DNA of 64,000 nt from Rebecca billardiae RCC1528 (GCA_965240325.2 OZ251254.1:558001-622000), one strand, 5' to 3'; positions 7,542 to 45,495 are shown, numbered from the stretch's first letter. Notes: generated by a model from the letters alone, not told the origin. A program made the numbers and translations.

Positions 7542-9410
7542 ATGGAGCGCACGTCGACTGCGCGCGATGGCGTGGCGCCCACGGCGCTGAGTTCGATGGC
7601 CGTTGACTCCCGCTGCGTCCTCTGCGGTGATCGCATTGGCCCGCAGCCGTGGGCGCAGCTCGCGTGCGGCGCGGAGCACGTCGCGCACAACGTGTGCCTC
7701 TTCGAGCGCGCGCTCGCGTCCGAGTGCTGCGCCGTGCGCTGCGGCCGCGCCGGCTGCGGGCGCATCACGCCCGTGGCGTCGGCGACGACCATGTACGCTG
7801 GCGTGCGTCAGCTCGACGCGGCGCGTCACGTCAAGGTCGCAGAGGGCAGAGGCCACGCCACACCTGTGGCGCCCTCGGGCGGAGGGCGGGACGGGGCGCA
7901 CCGCGGCAGTGCCGCCGCGCTGGCGGCGTCGGGGCCTGCGCTTGGCGCGCTGCCGTTCGAGCTGCTCGCCCGCATTCTGAGCCATCTTGGCAGTGCGCGT
8001 GACCTCGCGTCTGCCAACGCCGCCTCGCAACTCTTCCGCGGCGCGCCGGGCGGCCGCTCGGCGGTCGAGCACGCGTTGCGCGAGCGCGCGCACTCGCGAG
8101 GGCACAAGCGGCTGCTGCCGACGCAGCCGCTCACGTGGACAGCGAAACTACTCGGGTGTGAGCGTGTGCTGGAGATGAGTGCGCTGCACACCAGCGTCGC
8201 AGCGTGCGGCATTGATTACTACACGGCGTTCAGCGCGTTTGTGGACGCGGAGGGCGGGCTGCACACGTGCGGCGAGGAGGAGGTGTGGGAGGCGATGGAG
8301 GACGATGAGGAGCAAGAGCGTCGGGCCGGGTACGGCCGGCCCACCGCGATCGGCCACGGGACCGGGATGCCGCCCGTGCGTGTGCCCACGCGTGTGCCCT
8401 CGCTCTCAGCGGTGCGCGTGCGCGCCGTTGCGGCCGGCGGGCAGCACCTGCTCGCGCTGAGCGAGGCAGGCGCAGTGTACGGCTGCGGTGATAACTACTG
8501 CGGCCAGCTGGGGCTCGCGGACGTGTATACGTGCCCTGCGTTTACCGCGCTCGAGTCGCTCCGCGACGAGGTTGTCGTCTGCATCACGGCCGCCTTCAGC
8601 CACAGCTTCGCACTCGGCGCCGACGGCCGTGCGTACAGCTGGGGGGGCAACGAGTACGGCCAGCTCGGCCATGGCGACACGGAGAACCGGTGGGTGCCGA
8701 CGCGCATCCAGGCACCGGACGGCATTCGGGTTGGTGGCGTAGCTTCAAGCTATGAGCACACGCTGCTGCTCTCGACTGGTGGCTCCGTGTACTCGTGTGG
8801 CCACGGTGCCTCCGGGCGTCTCGGCCACGGCGACCAGCAGGATCAGCACACGCCGAGGCGCATCGAGGCGCTCGCGGGGATTCGCGCTGTGCATCTGAGC
8901 GCGGGCTGGCGGCACAGCCTGGTGGTGGACGCGCAGGGCGGCGTGCACTCTTTCGGACGTGGGGATGGCTGCCTTGGACACGGCGACGAAGCAGACCAAC
9001 CAGTGCCAACACCCATAGAGGCACTGGCGGGCATGCGCACCGTGCGCTGCGCTGCCGGCTTTCGCACCAGCGCGGTGGTGTGCGCGGACGGCAGCGTGCA
9101 CACGTTTGGTGACAACGACTATGGCCAGCTGGGGCTCGGGCACAGGGCCTTCACTGTGCGGGGGCCGGAGTGTGTGCATGCGTTCTCGCACGCGCGTCTG
9201 ATCCAGTGCTCGCTAGGCAAGTCCCACACGCTGTTCGTGACGGCGGACGGCGCTGTGCACGCGTGCGGCAAGCAGACGGCTGCGCTCGGCCTCGGCGTGG
9301 GTCCCATGGTCATGGATGACGTCGACGACGAGTCTGCAAGCACCGCAACGCCCGTGAATATCGCGCAGCTCCCGCCGCTAGCGTGCGACCGAGCACCGTG
9401 GACAGGGTAG
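7542..9410 (+). CDS. RCC1-repeat beta-propeller protein with N-terminal Cys/His cluster and F-box-like motif (paralogue 1)
   Basis: Repeated xAGxxHSxxx..G.VYSWGxNxYGQLGHG units; LPFELLARILSHL F-box-like motif; CVLC...C..H..C...CC..C...C N-terminus; intronless. Confidence 0.9.
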   Translation: MERTSTARDGVAPTALSSMAVDSRCVLCGDRIGPQPWAQLACGAEHVAHNVCLFERALASECCAVRCGRAGCGRITPVASATTMYAGVRQLDAARHVKVAEGRGHATPVAPSGGGRDGAHRGSAAALAASGPALGALPFELLARILSHLGSARDLASANAASQLFRGAPGGRSAVEHALRERAHSRGHKRLLPTQPLTWTAKLLGCERVLEMSALHTSVAACGIDYYTAFSAFVDAEGGLHTCGEEEVWEAMEDDEEQERRAGYGRPTAIGHGTGMPPVRVPTRVPSLSAVRVRAVAAGGQHLLALSEAGAVYGCGDNYCGQLGLADVYTCPAFTALESLRDEVVVCITAAFSHSFALGADGRAYSWGGNEYGQLGHGDTENRWVPTRIQAPDGIRVGGVASSYEHTLLLSTGGSVYSCGHGASGRLGHGDQQDQHTPRRIEALAGIRAVHLSAGWRHSLVVDAQGGVHSFGRGDGCLGHGDEADQPVPTPIEALAGMRTVRCAAGFRTSAVVCADGSVHTFGDNDYGQLGLGHRAFTVRGPECVHAFSHARLIQCSLGKSHTLFVTADGAVHACGKQTAALGLGVGPMVMDDVDDESASTATPVNIAQLPPLACDRAPWTG

Positions 9411-9698: not shown

Positions 9699-11548
9699 AT
9701 GGAGCACCCTTCGGCAGCACGCGATAGCGAGGTGCCCATGGCGCTGAGCGCACTGTCTGCCGACTGCGTCTGCGTGCTCGGCAGTGATCGCATCGGCCCG
9801 CAGCCGTGGGCGCAGCTCGCGTGCGGACGTGCCCACACAACGTGTGCCACTTCGAGCGCGCGCTCGCGTCCGGGTGCTGCGCCGTGCGCTGCGGCCGCGC
9901 CGGCTGCGGGCGCATCACGCCCGTGGCGTCGGCGACGACCATGTACGCAGGCTTGCGCCAGCTCGACGCGGCGCGTCACGTCAAGGTCGCGGAGGGCAGA
10001 GGCCACGCCACACCTGTGGCGCCCTCGGGCGGAGGGCGGGACGGGGCGCACCGCGGCAGTGCCGCCGCGCTGGAGGCGTCGGGGCCTGCGCTTGCTGCGC
10101 TGCCGTTCGAGCTGGTCGCACGCATTCTGGTCCACCCCAGCAGCGCGCGTGACCTCGCGTCTGCCAACGCCGCCTCGCGACTCTTCCGCGGCGCGCCGGG
10201 CGGCCGCTCGGCGGTCGAGCACGCGCTGCGCGAGCGCGCGCACTCGCGAGGGCACAAGCGGCTGCTGCCGACGGAGCCGCCCACGTGGACGGCGAAACTA
10301 CTCGAGTGTGAGCGTGTATGGGAGATGAGTGCGCTGCACGCCCGCGTCGCCGTGTGCGGCCACCCCCACTCGGCGTTCAGCGCGTTTGTGGACGCGGAGG
10401 GCGGGCTGCACACGTGCGGCGAGGAGGAGGTGTGGGAGGCGATGGAGGACGATGAGGAGCAAGAGCGTCGGGCCGGGTACGGCCGGCCCACCGCGATCGG
10501 CCACGGGACTGGGATGCCGCCCGTGCGTGTACCGACGCGCGTGCCCTCGCTGGCAGCGGTGCGCGTGCGCGCCGTGGCAGCTGGGCAAGCTCACCTGCTC
10601 GCGCTGAGCGGGGCCGGTGCGGTGTACGGCTGCGGCGACAACGGGAGTGGGCAGCTGGGCGTCAGCGACCGCCATGGGTGCTTGGCGTCTAGGCGGGTGG
10701 GCGCGCTGCGGCGAGATTTTATCGTCGGCATCGCTGCCGGCTGGAGCCACAGCTTCGCGCTCGGCGCCGACGGCCGTGCGCACAGCTGGGGCCGCAACGA
10801 GTACGGCCAGCTCGGCCATGGTGACACGGAGGAGCGGTGGGAGCCGACGCGCATCAAGGCGCTCGATGGCGTTCGCGTCGGTGGCATCGCTTCGGGCTAC
10901 GAGCACACGCTGCTGCTTTCGACCGGTGGCTCTGTGTACTCGTGTGGCTGTGACGTGTACGGGCAACTCGGCCACGGCGACCAGCAGGATCAGCACATGC
11001 CGAGGCGCATCGAGGCGCTCACGGGCGTGCGCGCCGTGCACGTGAGCGCTGGCCTATGGCACAGCCTGGTGGTGGACGAGCAGGGCGGCGTGCGCTCTTT
11101 TGGCGACGGGTATAATGGTTGCCTTGGGCACGGGGATTGGGCAGACCGGCCAGTGCCAACGCGCATCGACGCACTGGCGGGCATGCGCGCCGTGCGCTGC
11201 GCTGCCGGCTACCGCACCAGCGCGGTGGTGTGCGCGGACGGCAGCGTGCACACGTTTGGTGACAGCAGCTACGGCCAGCTGGGGCTTGGGCACAGGTCCA
11301 GCCCCGTGCTGAGGCCGGAGCGCGTGCGTGCACTCTCGCACGCGCGCGTGATCCAGTGCTCGCTAGGCGGCGCCCACGCGCGGTTCGTGACGGCGGACGG
11401 CGCGTTGCACGCGTGCGGCAGGCACACGGCCGCGCTCGGCCTCGGCGTGGGTCCCACGGATGACGAGTCTGCGAGCGCTGCAACGCCCACGCCCGTGCAG
11501 ATCGCGCAGCTCCCGCCGCTGGCGTGCCGTGCAGCACGGTCAAAGTAG
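9699..11548 (+). CDS. RCC1-repeat/F-box-like protein (paralogue 2, tandem duplicate) with a frameshift near 9830
   Basis: Colinear with 7542-9410. A net 7-nt deletion at ~9827-9836 shifts the frame from ATG 9699; the frame is open from ATG 9941 (MYAG) to the stop at 11548. Confidence 0.8.
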
Positions 11549-11849
11549 TTCCGATGCGGCAGCATCAAATAGGCACACGTGTAGCTATAGCCCCCATACG
11601 CGGACACGTGCACGTAAGCTTCCGGACCGTGCGGCCAACCGTCACCCTGGAATGCCTACCGTACGTGCGCGCGACGAAACACAGTGGAACAGCGCGCTCG
11701 CAAACCTGCTGTGAGTGCGCGCGTTTGCGCGCGCTTGGAACGCCGCGCTCGCCGCTCGACGGCTTTCACACCGCACGATCGCCCGCCCGCGCCGCGCGCG
11801 TGACTGTTCGCACGCCCGACGGGCACGAGATCGGCGCACGCCGCGTCAG

Positions 11850-14230
11850 ATGCCGCTCCGTGGGACCGCGCGCCTCGGCCTCGCGCTCGCGCTCGCGCTG
11901 AGCGCGCACGCCGCCGCCGCGTCCTCCGCCGCCTCGTCCGGCCGCGGCCGGCCGGCCGGCGCGCGCGGCGCCGACGGCGGCAGCGCGCAGGCGGCCGCGG
12001 CCGCGCGCGCGGCGCGCGAGCTCTCCGCGCTGCGCGAGTCGAGCGCGGGGCGCACGGGCACGAGCGCGGCCGCGCTCGCCTGGGCGGACGCGGGCGTCGC
12101 CGAGTGGAAGGCCGAGCTCCGCCGCGGCTCGCTGCCCTCGCTCGAGCCGGACCCGACGGCGGCGGGCGGCGGCGGCGGCGCGCCGCGCGACGTCTGGCCG
12201 GGCGAGCCGCTGTTCAGCCAGTTTCGGCAGACGTGCGCGGAGCTCGGGCTGCCAGCGCTCACGCGGCGCTACCCCGAGCTCTCGAACACGGTGATGCGCA
12301 CGCTCGTGCGCGAGGCCGCCGCCTTCCGCGAGCAGGTGAGCGCTGCGGCCGACGGCGACGGCGGCGGCGGCCAGTCGAAGGGCGCGGTGGAGGCGGCGGA
12401 GGAGGCGGCGCGCCGGCTGCGCGAGCAGTGGGACGGCGCGGCGGACGGCGTGCGCGCGCTCGAGGACGCGCTCGGCGGCCGCGCCCCGGACTCGCTCCTC
12501 CCGTCCGACGACGCGGACGCGGACGCGGACGCGGACGGCGCGGACGGCGGCGCGCCCGGCGGCGCCGACGCGTCCGCCTCGGCCGGCGGCGCGGCCGGCG
12601 CGGCGGCGCGCGGCGAGGGCGCGGAGGCGGACGAGGCCGCGGAGGGCGACGCCGACTTCGAGGCCGACGACCCGAGCGCCGCCGCCGCCGGCGCCGACGG
12701 CGGCGAGCCGGGGCGCGCGGGCGCGGACGGCGGAGTGTGGCGGCGCCGCGGATGGACAGAGCTCGCCGAGACGCGGCGCCGGCTGGAGCGGCTGCCGAGG
12801 CTGAGCAGGTTCATGGCGGACGTGGGCCGCCGCGCCGCGCTGAGCGGCCGCCGCCGCGCGCGCCTCCCGCTCCAGCGCCCCGCCTCGCCGCCCAGCCCGC
12901 CGGCGGTCGCGCTCGCGACTCGCGCGCCGCCCGCGGACGCGGCTGGCGTCGAGTCGGGCGACGACGTGGCACGCGCGCTGCCAGCGGAGCGCGCGCTGCT
13001 GCGCGCGGGCGTGGGCGGGCGTCGGCTCTTCCGCGCGCGGCTCGCCGAGCGCCGGCTGCTCTCCTACGCGCTGCACGGCTACACCGCCACGCCCGCGCGC
13101 CCGCCGCGCGGCCGCGAGGCGCGGCGCGAGCGCGTGCCTCTGTCAGACCACGGCGGACCGTTACTCATCTTACTCGACACGTCCGGCTCGATGCGCGGCG
13201 AGCGCGAGGCGCTGGCGAAGGGCGTGGTGCTCGCGGCGGCGCGGGTGGCGGCGCGCGAGGGCCGCGAGTGCCGCGTCATCTCCTTCGGCGGGTACAACGA
13301 CGGCGCGCACGTCTCGGCGCCGCTGCTGCTCGACGAGGGGCGGCGCGGCGTAACCGCCGGTGTAACGGCCGGCGTCACGGCCGGTGGAACCGCCGGCAGA
13401 ACGCCCGGCGGCGGCGGAGCGGCCGCGCCCGCGCCCTCCAAGGCGGGCCTGCACGCGCTGCTCGACTTCCTCTCGCACTCCTTCGACGGCGGCACCGACG
13501 CCGCGCCCGCGCTCACCAAGGCCGTGGAGTTGATCGAGCAAGCGGCCGAGCTCGGCGCCGCCGGCGCGGGCGGCGGGGCGAGCGGGGCGGCGCGGCAGGT
13601 GCGCTGGGGTGTGCCCGGCGCGGCGGGCCCGCCCCCGGGCGCGGCGCCGCGCGCGCCCGCGCGCCCGCCCGTGTCGGCGTACGGCGCCAGCCCCGCCGAC
13701 ACCGCCGCCGCCGCCGCGCTCGCCGCGGCCGACCTCGTGCTCGTCACAGATGGCGAGCTGCCCTCGCCGCCCGCGCCCGCGGAGGTGATGAAGCGGCTCG
13801 CGCGGCTGCGCGCGCGGCTGGGCACGCGCGTGCACTGCCTGCTCACGACGAGCGCGCGCGGCGCCGACTCGGTCCGAGGCCGCATGCAGGAGCTCGCCGG
13901 AGACGGCGCCGACGGCGGCGGCGTCCACTCCTTCCTGTGCGCGGAGCTCGACCCGAGCGCGGCCGCGGCGGCGGCGCCGCCGCCGCAGCACGCGGGCGCG
14001 GCGGGTGGCGGCGCGCGCGCGCGCGCCGGGCCGCCGCCGCGCGCGCCGCCGCCGCGCAGCCGCATCGCGTGGCGCGCGCGCGGCGGCGCGGCGGCCGCGG
14101 CGCCGTGCGCCGCGGCGCGCGCGCGCGCGCGCTCGTGCGGCCGAATCGTCGCCGCCGCGCCGGCGGCGCACGGCCGCCGCCCTCGCTGGCGGCACGCCGC
14201 GGCGCCGTCGGCCGCGCGCACCATCATCGG

Positions 14231-14268
<38 letters not shown>

Positions 14269-16892
14269 ACCGTGACACCCGTGCCGACGGCGGCGGCGGC
14301 GCGTCCGCGGCGGCCGACAACGACGCCGCCGCCCTCGCCGAGCTGCGCGCGCTCGCGCCTCAGCTCGAGGCCGCGCGGCGCGCGCTCGAGGCGGGGCTGC
14401 TGGAGCGCGAGGCCGTGTGCGGCGCTCTGCTGCTGGCAGCGGTGTGTGGCGAGCACGCGCTGCTGCTAGGGCCGCCGGGCACCGCAAAGTCGCTCGTCGC
14501 GCGCCGGCTCGCGGCCGCGTGCGGAGGCCGGCGCTTCGAGGTCCTTCTCACGCGATTCTCAGCGCCGGAGGAATTGTTCGGCCCCCTGTCGCTCGCAGCG
14601 CTGGAGGAAGACCGTTACGAGCGAGCGGTTGACGGTTACCTGCCCACCGCGACGGTGGCGTTTCTCGACGAGGTGTTCAAGGCGAACGGCGCCGTGCTCA
14701 ACGCGCTGCTCGGCGTGCTCAACGAGCGCGCGTTCACCAACGGCGGCCCGCCCGTGCGCGTGCCCCTGCTCAGCTGCGTCGGCGCGTCCAATGAACTCCC
14801 GGAGGGCGAGGAGCTCGCCGCCCTGTGGGACCGGTTTCTCGTGAGACTGCCCGTGCCGCCGGTCTCGGATGCGTCGGTACACGCGCTGATCGGCGCGGAC
14901 GAGCCCGCGGACGTCGGCCTCGGCGCGCGCGCCGAGCGCGGCGCGCGGCGCGCCGCGCTCGCGGACGCCGCCGCCGCGCCGCCGGCGGACGATCCTTCGC
15001 TCGCGGTCGACGCGCCGCGCGCGGTGGCGCGCGCGCGCGCGCTGCTCGGCATCGGCGCGGTGTCGGAGCTGCGCGCGGCCGGGTGCGCGGAGGCGGAGGC
15101 GGCGCGGCTGCCCAGCCTCTCCGCGCTCTCCGCGGCGGTGCGCCTCCCCGCACACGTCGCGGCGCTCCTCACCGACGCGCGCGCCTACGTCGCTCAGCTG
15201 GCCGCGGCGGGCGGCGGCGGCGCCGCGCCGGACGCGCTCAGCGGCATCTCAGACCGGCGTCTTGTGCAGTGCGCGCGGATGCTGCGCGTGTCCGCGGCGA
15301 CGCACGGGCGGGGCGTGGTGGGCCCCGCCGACGTGCTCACGCTGCCCGCCGCGCTGTGGGGCGACCCGGACCAGCTCGAGGCAGTCCGGGAGTTTGTGCA
15401 CGCGCGCTCCATTCCCGAGCCGCCGTGCGCGCAGCTGCGGCTGATGGCCGACACTCTGTTGGCGGAGGGCGTGGCGGCGCTCGCGCCGTCGCCAGGCGGC
15501 GGCGGCGGCGGCGGTGCTGGCGGTGCCGCGGACGCGCGGGCGGGCGCGCGCGCGCAGCAGCAGGCGCAGCAGCAGCAGCCGGATGACGGCGCGCTGCCCA
15601 GCCCCGCCGCCGAGGCCGCGCCGCTGCGCGCCCTGCAACAGGATGTCGCGCAGCTGGCCGCGGCCGTGCGCGCCGAGCGCGCGCAGCTGGGCAGCCAGGC
15701 GGCAGAGCTGGGCCTCCGCGGCCTCGGCGCAGACGCGGGCCGCAGCGACGACGCAGCCGCCGCCGCCGCGCCCACCGCCGCCCCCGAGCTGCTCGCGCGA
15801 CACCTCTGGGTGCCACCGTCCGAGCTCGCGGCCGCGGCGACGCGCGTCGAGCCGTCCGTGCGGCGCTGGGCGCAGGAGCTCGACGTGCTGGCGGAAGTGG
15901 CGACGGCGCTCTTGTCGGCGCTGGGCGCGGGCTCGGGCGGCGGCGCGGAGGGCGCGGGCTCGCGCACGCCCTCGCCCCCGCGCCCGCCCTTCTGCGTGTA
16001 CGCCCACCTCCGCGCCCTCGCCGAGGCCCTCGACGCCTTCGACACGCAGATGGCGCAGGCGCCGCCGCGAGACGCTGGCGGCTGGGCGGCGGACGCGCGC
16101 GCCGAGCTGCGCGAGTCGATCGCGCGCGCGGAGCGCGTGGCGGCGCGGTGCGCGGAGCGCGTCGCGCAGGCGCAGGGCCCGGCCGGCCGCCTCGCGCGCG
16201 CCGCCGCGCCGCCCGAGCGCATCGACGTCTCGTTCGGCCGCGTGTGGGCCGCGGCCGGCCGCGCCGCCGCCGCCGCCGCCGCCGGTGGGCGCTCGTCGCC
16301 GCTCGTGCGCGCCGCCGCGGCCGCGGAGGTGTGGAGCCTGCGGTACTCGGCGGCAGAGGACGGCTACCTGGAGGGCGTGGAGGGCAGCGTGGGCGCGGAG
16401 GCGGCGCGCGGCTGGTCCGCCGGCGTCTGGGAGGCCGAGAACGTCGCGCGCGTGTGCGATGGCGCTGAGGGCGCCGACGGCGGCGGCGGCAGCGCGTGGC
16501 TTGCGCGCGCCGGGCCGGGCCCCGCCTTCATCGAGTGGCGGTTCGCGCCGGCCGAGGGCTGCGAGATCGCGGGGTGCTGGCTGCGCGCGCGCTCCGAGGA
16601 GGTCAGCTTCGCCGACCGCATCCGCTGGATCATCTCCGACGACGGCGGCGAGACGTGGCAGCCAGTCAGCGGCCGCGCCACGCGCGGGCTCGACCGGCCG
16701 GGCGGCGTGACGCGCGCGCTCTCGCTCGCGCTGCGCGTCGAGCTGGGCGGCGGCGCGGACGGCTCGGGCCAAGGGCAGGGGGCGGCGCCGTCCGCGCGGC
16801 TCTTCCGCGAGCCGCTCGCGCCCGCGGCGGGCGGCGCGTGCGGCTTCGAGGTGCTGCTGCCTGTCCGGCGCATCAGCGATCAGATCTGGTGA
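11850..16892 (+). CDS. Fusion protein: signal peptide + ViaA-like VWA + RavA-like MoxR AAA+ ATPase + PAW-like C-terminal domain
   Basis: Leader MPLRGTARLGLALALALSAHAAA. VWA motifs: GPLLILLDTSGSM, FLSHSFDGGTD, ADLVLVTDGE. AAA+ motifs: GPPGTAKS, TRFSAPEELFGP, FLDEVFKA, ASNELP, LWDRF, SDRR. C-terminus LRYSAAEDGY..W..GVW..WLAR..IEWRF..LFRE. One uninterrupted ORF. Confidence 0.88.
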
Positions 16893-18112
16893 TCATCGAT
16901 CCGGAGCGGGAAGTCCGGAGGCTCCGGAGCCTCCGGAGGGAAGTCGGGATCGCGCAGGTAGGTGCTTAAGACGCTGATGGATGGTCTGCCGAGATCCTTC
17001 GCCCCGCCAGTACACGCCGATGACGAATAACCCATATATATATATATATATGACCGCGTTCCGCGGTCTTTTTCCGTAGAACGAACGTAGTTCGGGGCCC
17101 GCGGCGCACCCTCCGTCGGCTGCTGTCTCAGTCTGACATGTGTAACAGTTCGCCTGAGCTGCCACCGCCAACTCAGTCACTGCCGCCCACCGGGCCGGCG
17201 GGCCGAGGACTGTCGCCGCGGGTCCGCGGGCCGCCGCGGGGACTAGCGGCCGGCGCGCGCGCGCAGGCAGGGCGAGAGGCGCTGGCGCGGCGCGAGCCGG
17301 CGCGTGCGCGCGAGCGGGCGCACCTGCTTGAGGTACTCGCCCTGCGCCATGCGCTCGACGACGGGCCGCTGGTCGCTCGTGCCGGCAGAGCGAGAGCGCG
17401 CGCCACTGCTGGCCCCGGCCTGCCGGCTGCGCAGCCTCGCACCGAGACCGACCGAGCGGAGCTCGGGGCGGTGGAACGAGGCGAGCGGCGCGTCGCGCCT
17501 GCCGCCGCGCGTGCGCGCCTGCTCCACCGCGCCGCCGTGCTCGCCCGCCGCCTCCTCCGCCGCGTCGGCCTCGAAGACGGCGGCTGCCAGCGGCAGGCTG
17601 AGCCGCGCGCCGGCTCACTCACACTGTGAGTCACACCCGCGGTCGCCTCGACAGCCAACTATCCACAGCTGCTCGAGCTGCTGGAGGGCGCCGCGACGAT
17701 GGCGGCGCGGGCGCCCAGCGCGTCCGTTGCCGCGTCGCTCAGCTCGTCGAGCTCGGCGCCGCACTTCGCCAGCTTGGCGCCTAGCGCCTCCGCGTGTCAC
17801 GTGCTCGTGCACGTCAGCCTGCTGATACGCCGCCGCCCATCGGCACTTCTGGCATCTGCGCGCGCAGCTGCTGCAGCTCGACGGCGGAGTCGTCGCGGCT
17901 GGCGGCGAGGGTGCGCACCGCGTCGATTGCCGAGGCCTGCAGCCCGGTGATCGCCGCGTCGACGCGCGCGGCGATTTCCCCACGCAGCCTCCTCGCGCCA
18001 CGTGGCCGCCGCTCGCGTGGCAGGCAGCTGGGCGCCGCTGCGCGACCCGGAACCGGCGCGCGTTTCACTGATGCTCCTGCTCGTCCTCACGCTGCTGCAC
18101 CTCCGCGCCGCC

Positions 18113-29864: not shown

Positions 29865-31378
29865 TTACTGATCCGGATCCGGGGGGATTAGTCGGTCGCG
29901 CGCAGGTGCTTGAGACGCTGCGATGATGGCGGATGGTCTGCCGAGATCCTTCGATCGCCCCAGTACATGCACGCCGAATAACCCGCCGCCAAGCATAGAG
30001 AGAGAGAGAGAGAGAGAGAGAGCCAGCGCGCGCGCGCGCGCGCAGCACGACTGCGGAGCAGTGATGTCCGCGCCCCTAAGTCGGCCTCACGAGACGGCAC
30101 TTCACAGTTCACTGGCGGCCTCCGCGCCGCGCGCTTCGGCCGCGGTCCGGGTCGCCGACAGGCGGCCACGGCCGGAGTGTCTAGCAGCCGTAGTTGCTGA
30201 TCATCGGCGCGGCGGTATAGCAGTCGTCGTGCTGATGAACTGAAGCATCAGACGACTGCTACCGGCGCTATTATAGTATATGTACGACCGCGCGCATCTG
30301 CGTGAGTAGAATCTGCGTCAGTACAGCAACGGCTCTGACTAGCGTAGTCACTGATGCTTATTGATATATAATAATATATATGCGCGCGATGTTTATATAT
30401 ATAGGCGGACGCGAATATAATAATCTGATGATAGATCCTGCGCGCCACACGGACGCGCTAGTGCCCGTCGTTGATGATCATCAGGCGGCTATCAGTCGGA
30501 CGCGGCAAGTACGGTCGTAGTCATTATACGCGCGCTTGCTGCGGGCCGTCTCGGGATGATGAGGCTACCGCGCTGATGCGGTTCAGTCGGAGCCGCTACT
30601 GACGCCAGCCAGGTCGTCGTTATAGTGAGCCAGCAGTACATAGAGTAGCAGCCGCCTGCATGGCGGTTTGTAGTACTCGCGCGATCGAGAGCAGGCGGTC
30701 CGGTTGCGATCTCAGCTCGTTACCGCGCGTGAATAAGAGAGTCCCGGCCTTTGGTCGAGGTTGCACCTCAGCCACATCGCCGAGGGCGCGACCGACGACA
30801 AAGAGGCGCGCGCATACTGCCAATATTGAGTGCCATCGCGGCATCAGGGCCCACCAATGCGGGCGAGCCGCGAGGCGCCACGTGAGTTGCGGGCGTGTCA
30901 CACTGCGCCGTCAGCATCAGGACCGCATCACTGAGACGGAGATACAGCACTGACCGATATACCGTGGGGTGTAGCCATCAATATACTGCGGCACACGGTA
31001 CACTGCCGATACCTTCGTCAGGCTAATAATGCAGATACCACGCCAAAGCAGGGGACTCACTCCACTTGGACTACGTGCTAGTGTAGCTACTATACAGTAC
31101 TCATGCTGCCTACTACGTGATTCCGAACTGCCGGTTATCGGTGCCTGTGATTGCATGCGCGGTTGAACAGGCGACGGCCTGGCGGCCCCAGTTGTAATAA
31201 GTTGCAGCCCACTGGCCACTGGGCGTGGTCCAATGGCTTAGCAGGGCAGTCAGTGCTAGCTACGCAGCCACATCATGCAGCGCTACCGGCAGCCCGTGCT
31301 GAGCGGTAACGAACTTCACTGTTGCCTCCACCACCCACCCCTGGCAACGTACAAGTGGAGCGTCGCGAGAGGCGCGCG

Positions 31379-42946: not shown

Positions 42947-43626
42947 TCGACATCATGACAATGTTATATATTATTATTATATTATTAATATAATAATAAC
43001 ATCGTCATCCGAGCGTCTCATCATGTATCGTCCCGCCGCCCGCGCCGATCACGTAATCGGTCGTGGACGTAGTAGTCGGCCTAGTGGTTCAGTCGTTCGG
43101 TAACATCGGCCCGCCCCGCGATATATGCTCGTCATCAGTTAGATGGCAGCCTGCTAGTGATATGGCGGCCTGATGCGCGGCGGCTGATAATGCCGCAATA
43201 TGATTAACATGCCGCGGCCCCGCACGGCCCCGCTGATCCTGATGGCGGCGAGTCGGATAACGGATTGACAGTCTGCCGGTCACACATTACATTGGTCATT
43301 GCTACTCAGGAATGAAATCAGGCGTACAGTGTCACCTGACATATCAGTATAAACCCGGCACCCTCGCTCGACTGGCACCTCGGCGACCTCGGCACCTCGG
43401 CGACCTCCGGCGATCACTCGCTGACATTGCAGACTGCTGCTGATCTGAGTGATCAAGCAGAGCTCTCGGACTCGGATCGAGCGCCTGGCCGCTTTCCGGG
43501 ATTGCCCTGAACTGCATGGGCGGTCGCGCAGCGGTGCCTGTCTGCAGTGGCGACGACCAACGGGTGCGCTGCGCACAACCGGGGGCGAACAGGCACCCAA
43601 AGCAAAAGCCGCGGGCCGAGCGAGCG

Positions 43627-45495
43627 ATGGACGCGGCCGATCCGCGCGATGCGCTCGACAACGCGCTGCTGGACAGCGACGCAGACGAGGAGGACGAGGA
43701 GGATCAGAGCCGTGGCAGGTGGAGGCGCCCGAGCGTCGACTTCTGGACGCGCATGGGCCGCGCGGAGAGCGCCGTCTCACTCTCGAGCCTCGTGCTCGGC
43801 GCGGGCGAGGTTGCAGACGGCTCGGTGCTGCGCGCGCGCGCGATGTCCGCGGCTGCGCTCGACGGCTACGCGGGAAAGCTCTCGCCGGCGGCGCCCTCGC
43901 GTATCACGCGCGCTCGGGCACCGACGGCGCCGCATGCCTACGCGCACGCCCGCCGCTCGCGGCTGGACACGCCGCCGATCACCGAGGACGAGACCGCCGC
44001 AGCGGGCGCCGACGACGTCGCCGTGCCGGCCGCGGTCGGCGAAGGCGGCATGTCCGTGCGCGTGGTAGGGCTGCTGTGTCTCTGCCAGATCGCCCACTTC
44101 TACTCCATGTGCTCCATCTTCTCGTACGCGGGCTTCCTGTGCGTGGACGCGGGCTGGGTGGAGTCGGCGGACCGCGCGGGCTTCCTAGCCGGGCTTCTGG
44201 CGACCATGCTGCCGCTCGGCCGGCTGCCCACGTCCGTGCCTTGGGGGCACCTGGCGGACAAGGCGGGCCGGCGGCCCGCGCTCGTCGGCTCGATGGCGGG
44301 CGTCGCCCTCGGCTCCGTCGCGTTCGCGTTCTGCACCGACCTGCGCGCTGCGCTTGCGGTGCGCTTTGTGCTGCTGGGCGGCGGCAACGGCTGGAACTCG
44401 ATCCTCGGGCCGATCTGCGCGGAGAACGCGGGCGGCGAGCAGGCGCGCCTGATCGGCTACGTGTTTGGCGCCGGCGGCGTGATCAACATGCTCGGCCCCG
44501 CCGTCGGCGGGCTGACGTACGGCAGCGGGCCGCTGGGCGCGCGCTTCCCCGCGATGGTGCCCTCCCTGATCGGGGCAGTGCTCGGCGCCCTGGCCGCGCT
44601 GCTCGCATATCTGTGGCTGCCCGAGACCAAGCCGGTGGCCGCGCGGCCACGGCTCAGCCTCGGCTCGCGCGCGAGCGGCGCCTCGCGTACCTCCGGCCCC
44701 CGGCTCAGTGGCACGTCCGGGCCTCGGCTCAGCAGCGCGAGCGGCGGCGCCGCAAAGACCGGCAAGCAGCTCGGGAGCGACGCCGGCGCGGCGGCGGGCC
44801 CGGGGCTTGGGCGCGCGCTGCTCACGACGCCGATGCCCGCCATGCTCGTCCTGCGCAGCGGCATCGGCCTCGCGGCGTTTGCGAGCTACGACATCGTCCC
44901 GCTGTGGGCGATCGCCTCGTTGGACGCGGGAGGCGTGCAGCTGCCCAAGCAGTCCCTAGGCCTCCTCCTCGCCGCGGCCGCGAGCGTGCAGCTGCTGTGG
45001 ACGACGTTTGCGATGGGGCCGGTCATGGCGCGCGCGGGCAGCCGGCGGACGTTCGCCGGCGCGTGCGTCGTCGGCGCGTGCGCGCTCGTCGCGCTGCCGC
45101 ACACGCACACGATGCCGCTGCTCGCTGTGATCCCGCTCGTGGCCGCGCAGGCAGCCGCGCTCAACACCGCCTGCACGGCCTCCATCATCGCGACCAACGA
45201 GGCTGTGACCCTCGTCGCGCACGAGCTCGCGGGCGCGCTCAACGGCGTGCTCGTCACGGCCGAGTCCGTCGCCAAGGCGCTCGGGCCGGCTGTGGCGGCG
45301 CCCTTGTTCGCAGCGGCGATCACGGCTCGGCCAGCGTCAGAGGGGCAGCCCAGCGGCGCCGCGCTCACCTTCGCGGGGCTCGCCGTGCTCGTCAGCCTCT
45401 TTGGCGCCGGCGCGGCTCGCTTTCTGCGCGCCCTCGACTCGCGCGATCGCGAGCCCGACAGCCTCCCGGTCGTCGCAGAGCACTTGCTGGAATGA
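43627..45495 (+). CDS. Major facilitator superfamily transporter (ZIFL/DHA1-like)
   Basis: About 12 hydrophobic segments; motif A WGHLADKAGRRPAL; GPAVGG; ESVAKALGP. An alternative ATG lies at 43516. Confidence 0.9.
   Translation: MDAADPRDALDNALLDSDADEEDEEDQSRGRWRRPSVDFWTRMGRAESAVSLSSLVLGAGEVADGSVLRARAMSAAALDGYAGKLSPAAPSRITRARAPTAPHAYAHARRSRLDTPPITEDETAAAGADDVAVPAAVGEGGMSVRVVGLLCLCQIAHFYSMCSIFSYAGFLCVDAGWVESADRAGFLAGLLATMLPLGRLPTSVPWGHLADKAGRRPALVGSMAGVALGSVAFAFCTDLRAALAVRFVLLGGGNGWNSILGPICAENAGGEQARLIGYVFGAGGVINMLGPAVGGLTYGSGPLGARFPAMVPSLIGAVLGALAALLAYLWLPETKPVAARPRLSLGSRASGASRTSGPRLSGTSGPRLSSASGGAAKTGKQLGSDAGAAAGPGLGRALLTTPMPAMLVLRSGIGLAAFASYDIVPLWAIASLDAGGVQLPKQSLGLLLAAAASVQLLWTTFAMGPVMARAGSRRTFAGACVVGACALVALPHTHTMPLLAVIPLVAAQAAALNTACTASIIATNEAVTLVAHELAGALNGVLVTAESVAKALGPAVAAPLFAAAITARPASEGQPSGAALTFAGLAVLVSLFGAGAARFLRALDSRDREPDSLPVVAEHLLE

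Follow-up and report, generated by a model that had tools for sequence, protein, structure and literature searches.

A Predicted Single-Chain ViaA-like/RavA-like MoxR Chaperone with a PAW-like C-terminal Domain in the Alga Rebecca billardiae

Results

Organization of the Locus

The 64,000-nucleotide stretch of Rebecca billardiae RCC1528 DNA analyzed here (GCA_965240325.2 OZ251254.1:558001-622000; referred to below as the window, with positions counted from its first nucleotide) contains a long open reading frame (ORF) that extends from stop to stop over 11715-16892 on the plus strand. From its first ATG at 11850 to the stop codon at 16890-16892 it encodes a product of 1680 residues, in which a hydrophobic leader is followed by a ViaA-like region with a VWA domain, a RavA-like AAA+ module of the MoxR class and a PAW-like domain. 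An earlier reading of the locus, made from the sequence alone (the sequence-only reading), had proposed that the ViaA-like, RavA-like AAA+ and C-terminal parts are joined in one frame. The ORF and the hidden Markov model matches described below bear this out, and a motif search of the translation located each of the motifs it had named. The features are listed here with their strand and, in parentheses, the evidence on which each is based.

11850-11921 (+): start codon and signal-peptide-like leader (first ATG of the ORF, hydropathy, orthologues that start alike)
11922-12074 (+): Ser/Ala/Arg/Gly-rich, transit-peptide-like stretch (computed composition)
12075-13160 (+): ViaA-like N-terminal region with low-complexity Asp/Ala/Gly inserts (NCBIfam ViaA, blocks conserved in orthologues)
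12957, 13176, 13488 and 13743 (+): motifs GDDVARAL, DTSGS, GGTD and VTDGE, respectively (translation search)
13161-13946 (+): VWA domain with a complete metal-ion-dependent adhesion site (MIDAS) (motifs, Pfam VWA_2)
13947-14330 (+): linker, an Arg/Ala/Pro-rich basic stretch and then an Asp run (composition, comparison with orthologues)
14364-14897 (+): alpha/beta domain of a RavA-type MoxR AAA+ module (Pfam, NCBIfam, 3nbx)
14469, 14661, 14784 and 15249 (+): motifs GPPGTAKS, FLDEVFKA, ASNE and SDRR, respectively (translation search)
14898-15245 (+): low-complexity insert between the alpha/beta domain and the lid (gap between bpMoxR and AAA_lid_8 and between the aligned RavA stretches)
15246-15398 (+): AAA+ lid with sensor 2, SDRR, at 15249-15260 (AAA_lid_8; aligns with RavA 245-299)
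15399-16313 (+): Ala-rich post-lid region with Gly/Gln runs (no family match)
16314-16889 (+): PAW-like beta-sandwich domain (Pfam, phmmer, AlphaFold2 model, Foldseek, VIA-align)
16335 and 16800 (+): motifs SLRYSA and LFREP, respectively (translation search)
16890-16892 (+): stop codon (end of the ORF)
25665-29877 (+): second copy of 12693-16905 (blastn within the window, 99.1% identity, no gaps)

The G+C (GC) content of the gene is 74-85%, and its surroundings are eukaryote-like and extremely GC-rich. Since stop codons are rare in such DNA, an open frame alone is weak evidence, and weakest of all over the linker; several other frames of the same stretch are likewise open, for 400-720 codons. 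Support for the frame comes from the GC content at codon position 3 (GC3), which is ~0.96 over the full ORF compared with 0.44-0.9 at position 2 (GC2), and from the third-position bias seen when the two copies within the window are compared. The second copy, 4.2 kb long, starts inside the coding region and ends 13 bases past the stop codon. Missing from it are the first 281 codons, and with them the leader; an in-frame stop is present just upstream, and its ORF spans 25707-29864. The copies differ at 37 sites. Third codon positions account for 23 of these, and for 22 of the 34 that lie in the coding sequence (p = 4.5e-5 for the excess). The ratio of nonsynonymous to synonymous substitution rates (dN/dS) between them is 0.20 (p = 3e-6 against neutrality), showing that the frame is under protein-level selection. 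The second copy may still be constrained, or the two copies may be alleles split by the assembly.

ViaA-like and RavA-like Parts

Within the N-terminal 700 residues the NCBIfam ViaA model NF008230 matches two stretches with an E value of 5.2e-22, the best at 12918-13286. The score of 78.7 bits, against an equivalog cut-off of 500, falls short of equivalence to a whole ViaA; conserved blocks of the ViaA region are common to the window and the algal orthologues. The MIDAS of the VWA domain is complete, with D-T-S-G-S at 13176-13190, the Thr of GGTD at 13494-13496 and the Asp of VTDGE at 13749-13751. Pfam VWA_2 matches the window protein with an E value of 1.5e-4, under its cut-off, while orthologues pass the cut-offs of both VWA_2 and VWA_CoxE.

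The ATPase part is matched by Pfam bpMoxR (PF20030) with an E value of 7e-59, and AAA_5 (1.5e-24) and AAA_lid_8 (2.3e-12) both score above their cut-offs. Walker A (14469-14492), Walker B (14661-14684), sensor 1 (ASNE, 14784-14795), sensor 2 and a MoxR-type lid are all present, as expected of the RavA branch of MoxR ATPases. In a phmmer search of the PDB, E. coli RavA (3nbx) was found with an E value of 8e-53, the aligned RavA residues being only 6-186 and 245-299. The NCBIfam RavA model NF010054 gives an E value of 4.3e-60 and 204 bits against an equivalog cut-off of 681, which is short of equivalence to RavA proper. Beyond the lid, the region 15399-16313 has no Pfam or NCBIfam match at E values up to 1; it does show 32-39% identity by BLASTP to two relatives, P0096 and P0101, over more than 320 residues. 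LARA is the partner-binding domain of RavA. Neither LARA nor the RavA C-terminal domain was detected in the window protein with Pfam at E values up to 1. Because of this, and because the NCBIfam scores are far under the equivalog cut-offs, we describe the two parts as a RavA-like/ViaA-like pair and not as RavA and ViaA proper.

Over the linker that joins the two parts GC3 is 0.96-0.98, GC2 rises to 0.9, and all frames are open. Its length and sequence vary by species, while the pattern of a basic followed by an acidic stretch is common to the orthologues. An in-frame intron was considered here and judged unlikely: no GT..AG pair that preserves the frame has a pyrimidine tract, and the use of one such pair would remove part of the conserved ViaA sequence. 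The coding region of the AAA+ domain, uninterrupted in the window, is split by two introns in a related genome (L001 1-450; GC content 78%). Each of these introns has a long CT-rich tract at its end, and the dinucleotide GC, instead of GT, apparently opens the first one. The linker of another relative, P0100, contains a tandem duplication of ~50 residues that starts with the last conserved ViaA motif, C-A-E-V-D/E-G-F-Y-R-V.

A Family of Algal Fusions

The sequence-only reading had suggested looking for the same architecture in other algal proteomes, and a search limited to long proteins recovered 69 protein clusters with a RavA-type module, most of them also with VWA domains. Named members come from diatoms (Chaetoceros, Cyclotella, Conticribra, Cylindrotheca, Thalassiosira), a haptophyte (Prymnesium parvum) and dinoflagellates (Symbiodinium, Polarella, Effrenium, Prorocentrum), and some members of the family are derived from transcriptomes (P0011, labeled 'type:complete', and P0086/P0096 from MMETSP). 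In six of the seven proteins scanned the VWA domain lies ~300-500 residues ahead of the MoxR module; the window protein is arranged in the same way, with the ViaA-like part N-terminal to the RavA-like part. The database labels of family members are MoxR-like ATPase, VWFA protein and ravA. The ViaA-RavA fusion is common in algae with red-type plastids, and public databases already list its members by generic names.

Most members that reach their C-terminus (e.g., P0005, P0035, P0100) end in a conserved basic tail of ~30 residues, KEAK...F/Y..W-K-K/R-A-K/R-K. The window protein has no such tail and ends in the PAW-like domain instead, an ending shared with two relatives, P0086/P0096 (MMETSP transcripts, 34-38% identity) and P0101 (a Logan contig). 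P0101 was recovered by a word-based protein search with P0096; the same kind of search with the C-terminus of the window protein gave no match, probably because it was swamped by Ala-rich words. Metagenome scans for the PAW-like domain revealed no further members that bear it.

To place these proteins we used a tree of the region that lies between the ATPase and PAW-like domains (29 rows, 294 columns, a quick IQ-TREE search with the Shimodaira-Hasegawa-like approximate likelihood ratio test, SH-aLRT). The window protein, P0096 and P0101 form a group (SH-aLRT 99) that is sister to the tail-bearing P0100 (97). This PAW clade together with P0100 stands apart from the prymnesiophyte-type clade, the diatoms and the dinoflagellates, and the window protein lies with the haptophyte-type members. 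The sister position of P0100 implies that the tail was exchanged for the PAW-like domain in one sub-lineage. P0100 falls in one 90% cluster with a protein of Diacronema sp. CCMP2436, and the exchange is probably to be placed within the Pavlovophyceae. The PAW and tail forms may be orthologues or paralogues.

The claim that the architecture had not been described holds in part. The two-part fusion is widespread in diatoms, haptophytes and dinoflagellates; on the other hand, the PAW-like end is rare, and the literature searched contains no description of an algal ViaA-RavA fusion or of a PAW domain joined to an AAA+ ATPase. A survey of MoxR-vWA systems (PMC7159879) and a plastid-proteome paper make no mention of an algal ViaA-RavA fusion. 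What is new here is a rare, lineage-specific PAW-like addition to a fusion family that is without description in this literature.

Two dinoflagellate members of the family, P0045 (residues 936-985; E value 2.5e-13) and P0058 (810-853), have a Clp N-terminal (Clp R) domain in their linker between VWA and MoxR. In Clp unfoldases the Clp N-terminal domain is a client- or adaptor-binding module.

The C-terminal Domain

The PAW domain of PNGase/NGLY1 is a mannose-binding module. Pfam PAW (PF04721) matches the C-terminal domain with an E value of 4.3e-5; its score, 23.9 bits with a 200-residue piece and 20.6 bits with a 463-residue piece, is under the gathering threshold of 31.4. When the PDB was searched with phmmer, the mouse PNGase PAW domain (2i74, also 2g9f) was found over the whole domain with an E value of 7e-4, and nothing else of note. 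A profile built from three sequences again found 2i74 as its sole full-length match (E value 1.7e-3), while a two-sequence profile found no match in the PDB. 'Cake' designer propellers rose to the top of the three-sequence search through summed repeats, no single stretch of which passed, and were set aside.

A first structure model, made from two sequences, had a predicted local distance difference test score (pLDDT) of 37.7 and was discarded. The AlphaFold2 model based on three sequences is all-beta, with a pLDDT of 58.6 and a predicted template modeling score (pTM) of 0.61, and shows the PAW beta-sandwich fold over the whole domain. In a Foldseek search of the PDB, 2g9g and 2g9f were the top matches (E value 5e-6; template modeling (TM) score 0.51-0.59), followed by an entry with an E value of 7e-3 and a TM score of 0.28. 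VIA-align superposed the model on the PNGase PAW domain with a Z score of 10.6, 151 of 180 residues aligned and 24% identity, compared with 7.6 for the next entry. Among the Swiss-Prot models of the AlphaFold DB, all ten PNGase entries returned fall within the first eleven matches, aligned over their PAW domains. PNGases also lead the matches in the AlphaFold DB cluster library, where stand-alone PAW-domain and BTB-domain proteins match over the same stretch. By these searches of a predicted model, the PAW domain of animal PNGase is the best and only clear structural match.

The fold search supports the PAW likeness that the sequence-only reading had seen in the C-terminus, with a sequence score that stays under the Pfam cut-off. 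The same reading was correct that DW and WQH of mouse PNGase, which we take to be mannose-contact residues, are unmatched; they face non-identical residues in the HMMER alignment. Its label of a module of the endoplasmic reticulum (ER)-associated degradation (ERAD) type, however, overreads the fold, since PAW folds also occur in BTB-domain and stand-alone PAW proteins, and in our searches nothing was found that links the window protein to quality control or ERAD.

An Asp-box, S-D-D-G-G-E-T-W (16635-16658), is conserved in the window protein, P0096 and P0101 and is absent from mouse PAW. Its presence explains the outcome of an exhaustive phmmer search with the C-terminal 242 residues, which found P0086 and otherwise mainly BNR/Asp-box repeat proteins.

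Leader and Targeting Sequences

The leader was assessed by a simple computation of composition and hydropathy. It consists of a basic n-region with two Arg, an 11-residue Leu/Ala core, LGLALALALSA (Kyte-Doolittle 2.27), and A-H-A before the likely cleavage site. The ~50-residue stretch behind it contains 7 basic and 3 acidic residues, for a net charge of +4, and homology to other family members begins directly after this stretch (11922-12074). In diatoms, Phe at the cleavage site of a signal peptide identifies proteins that are imported into the complex plastid. A predicted cleavage site with Phe behind the signal peptide is present in more than 15 diatom-type orthologues. In some prymnesiophyte-type orthologues (P0004, P0019, P0023) the leader is short and the conserved domain comes directly after it.

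Bacterial Relatives

RavA-like genes were found in 80 bacterial loci, mostly from Burkholderiales and other Proteobacteria and some from Myxococcota, and reach 57-68% identity to the window protein over the AAA+ core. Of 24 loci checked, 23 have a separate RavA-like ORF of ~480-630 codons from stop to stop, without a MIDAS; the remaining locus, L042, has an open frame of 990 codons, also without a MIDAS. ViaA-like sequence is present in 32 of the 80 loci and lies ~2.2 kb downstream of the RavA-like match in the best-matching loci listed. No PAW-like domain was found beside the RavA genes in any of the 80 loci. The bacterial origin that had been proposed for the two halves is plausible given this identity and the separate ORFs with ViaA-like sequence downstream. 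As the algal fusion reverses the bacterial gene order, it is not a simple operon read-through.

Two bacterial-looking proteins, P0020 and P0048, have RavA-like and ViaA-like parts fused in operon order, with the ATPase first, and are 65-66% identical to the AAA+ core of the window protein. In P0029 and P0041 an alpha-amylase catalytic domain (E values 2e-32 and 9e-31) is joined to a RavA-type MoxR module, a second case of a RavA-type ATPase tied to a carbohydrate-related domain. P0029 has a lipoprotein-like leader, so these two proteins may be bacterial.

Neighboring Genes

Two tandem RCC1-repeat genes lie just upstream of the fusion gene, at 7542-9410 and 9806-11548 (+), with RCC1-like domain E values of 3e-69 and 1e-72; the former also has a weak F-box-like match. 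An ORF at 19515-21008 (-) shows a weak match to Ulp1 protease (E value 1e-4), and a gene at 43516-45492 (+) encodes an MFS transporter (E value 1.4e-19).

Discussion

The features at this locus make it likely that a nuclear gene encodes a single-chain MoxR-class chaperone, in which a ViaA-like adaptor precedes a RavA-like ATPase, with a leader in front and a PAW-like end that replaces the basic tail. Several observations weigh against this conclusion or parts of it, and they are considered here together with the explanations that they would favor. As the linker is open in every frame, the case that it is translated is made from the orthologues and from the absence of any plausible intron, and the one-chain status of the window locus is likewise judged from relatives. 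The long frame could be an artefact of the extreme GC content: a linker open by chance would then bridge neighboring viaA-like and ravA-like genes, or else two exons with an in-frame intron between them. The other open frames of 400-720 codons in the same stretch, the GC2 of ~0.9 and odd Arg/Ala/Pro composition of the linker, and the introns of this gene in L001 would fit such an artefact. It is nonetheless very improbable, since VWA and MoxR lie on one polypeptide, in the same order and with a comparable linker, in six of the seven homologues scanned, and since the family includes transcriptome-derived sequences. What is more, GC3 does not drop across the linker, and the in-frame GT..AG candidates, one of which would remove conserved ViaA sequence, have nothing like the CT-rich tract of the L001 introns. 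Even less credible is the idea that a MoxR-vWA conflict (immunity) system was carried into the alga. It is suggested by the best Pfam model, PF20030, which is described as 'MoxR domain in the MoxR-vWA-beta-propeller ternary systems' (PMC7159879). No beta-propeller or effector partner is evident, however, the neighbors checked being the RCC1-repeat, Ulp1-like and MFS genes. The matches to the NCBIfam RavA and ViaA models and to E. coli RavA are strong, and the conservation of the family with plastid leaders across algal groups fits a housekeeping role.

Returning to the single-chain chaperone, the nature of its C-terminal domain and its destination both have competing explanations. The domain could be an Asp-box-bearing beta-sandwich of a generic jelly-roll or carbohydrate-binding type (reelin subrepeat, CBM32 or F5/8 type C) that resembles PAW through a few motifs. 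Apart from the Pfam score under the cut-off, the P0096 and P0101 domains alone do not match the Pfam PAW model, the exhaustive phmmer search gave mostly Asp-box repeat proteins, and the neighbors in an atlas feature search were CBM32, MAM and F5/8-C. The model, moreover, is built on three sequences and is of middling confidence (pLDDT 58.6), and since Foldseek also scores residue identity, the evidence from the fold overlaps in part with that from the sequence. Against this, PAW was the sole full-length match by phmmer, the Pfam model and the three-sequence profile, and it was separated from the next fold both in Foldseek E value and in Z score. The top of the AlphaFold DB searches, too, was made up of PNGases of many animals together with PAW-domain and BTB-domain proteins over the same stretch. 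We consequently regard the generic sandwich as doubtful, and a true PAW relationship, as judged from the modeled fold, as highly probable. As for destination, plastid, periplastid, ER and secreted locations would each be compatible with the leader. The residue that follows A-H-A in the window protein is Ala and not the aromatic residue or Leu of a bipartite plastid signal. The protein may act in the ER lumen or be secreted, where a PAW-like domain would meet the ordinary N-glycans of the secretory pathway. This Ala and the short leaders of P0004, P0019 and P0023 agree with such a location, which we find possible, albeit disfavored by the ~50 net-positive, Ser/Ala/Arg-rich residues behind the leader and by the canonical plastid leaders of the diatom orthologues. 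A plastid or periplastid destination appears somewhat preferable; the preference is held to be slight because the diatom orthologues have Phe where the window protein has Ala. The ER/periplastid/plastid route suggested by the sequence-only reading remains a prediction, made for a leader that lacks the aromatic residue of the diatom orthologues.

MoxR/VWA pairs combine an AAA+ ring with a MIDAS-bearing VWA protein to mature or remodel a specific client (PMC9976466, PMC4660213, PMC10585395, PMC7159879). For the window protein we infer the formation of a hexamer, the client and the PAW ligand, like the compartment, from such systems and from its relatives; that client and ligand are roles assigned by analogy belongs with the points against the model as a whole. 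As in RavA-ViaA, NorQ-NorD and CbbQ-CbbO, the AAA+ parts would assemble as a hexameric ring, with six tethered VWA domains that hold an acidic residue of the client via the MIDAS and six PAW-like domains that give a second contact, with a glycan or another ligand. ATP hydrolysis would then remodel the client, most likely in complex assembly or cofactor loading, in the plastid or on the route to it. A bolder version, in which the PAW-like domain is a working lectin and the protein the first MoxR-class AAA+ machine to choose its clients by glycan, seems to us rather unlikely. If it were true, possible clients would be N-glycosylated proteins crossing the membranes of the complex plastid, or a glycoconjugate made there, and the wider fusion family would be a conserved plastid assembly factor of diatoms, haptophytes and dinoflagellates.

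In bacteria, MoxR/VWA pairs mature nitric oxide reductase, Rubisco, CO dehydrogenase and respiratory complexes. The conservation of a fused form with plastid leaders in the main marine primary producers points to an unstudied plastid assembly or repair factor, whose client could be found in a transformable diatom. One adaptor per ATPase subunit and the reversed gene order bear on how MoxR/VWA machines work. The PAW-like end is a rare instance of the PAW fold outside deglycosylating enzymes and hints at a glycan role in one lineage.

Comparison with Known Systems

The window protein resembles the E. coli RavA-ViaA system (3nbx, 6q7l) in its AAA+ core with Walker A and B, sensors 1 and 2 and lid, in its match to the ViaA model (E value 5e-22) and in its complete MIDAS. 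In E. coli, however, two proteins are made from an operon with ravA followed by viaA, whereas here one chain has the ViaA-like before the RavA-like part; no LARA or RavA C-terminal domain is detected in it, and it has a eukaryotic leader and a PAW-like end. Its algal counterparts include the uncharacterized fusions represented by Chaetoceros tenuissimus CTEN210_12019 (P0005), Prymnesium parvum AB1Y20_020488 (P0035) and Symbiodinium 'ravA' (P0044), which share the order of domains, a comparable linker and a leader and are 38-66% identical to it over the AAA+ region. Most family members that reach their C-terminus are ~1000-1500 residues long and end in the basic tail, while the window protein has a PAW-like domain of ~190 residues in its place and many low-complexity inserts.

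With the PAW domains of animal PNGase/NGLY1 (2g9f, 2g9g, 2i74) the C-terminal domain shares the beta-sandwich and the motifs L-R-Y, G-W..G-V-W, L-A-R, I-x-W-x-F and L-F-R. It differs from them in being joined to an AAA+ ATPase and not to a transglutaminase-type amidase, and in having an Asp-box insert; PNGase is cytosolic, whereas the domain studied here lies behind a secretory leader.

In the single-chain proteins BchD and midasin the VWA domain comes after the AAA+ part, and two-protein systems have about one VWA protein per ring. The window protein departs from both arrangements, as its VWA domain comes first and one VWA domain is fixed to each ATPase subunit. What it has in common with NorQ-NorD, CbbQ-CbbO, CoxD-CoxE, the Mg-chelatase BchI/BchD and midasin is the pairing of a MoxR or related AAA+ ring module with a MIDAS-bearing VWA domain (PMC9976466, PMC4660213, PMC7159879).

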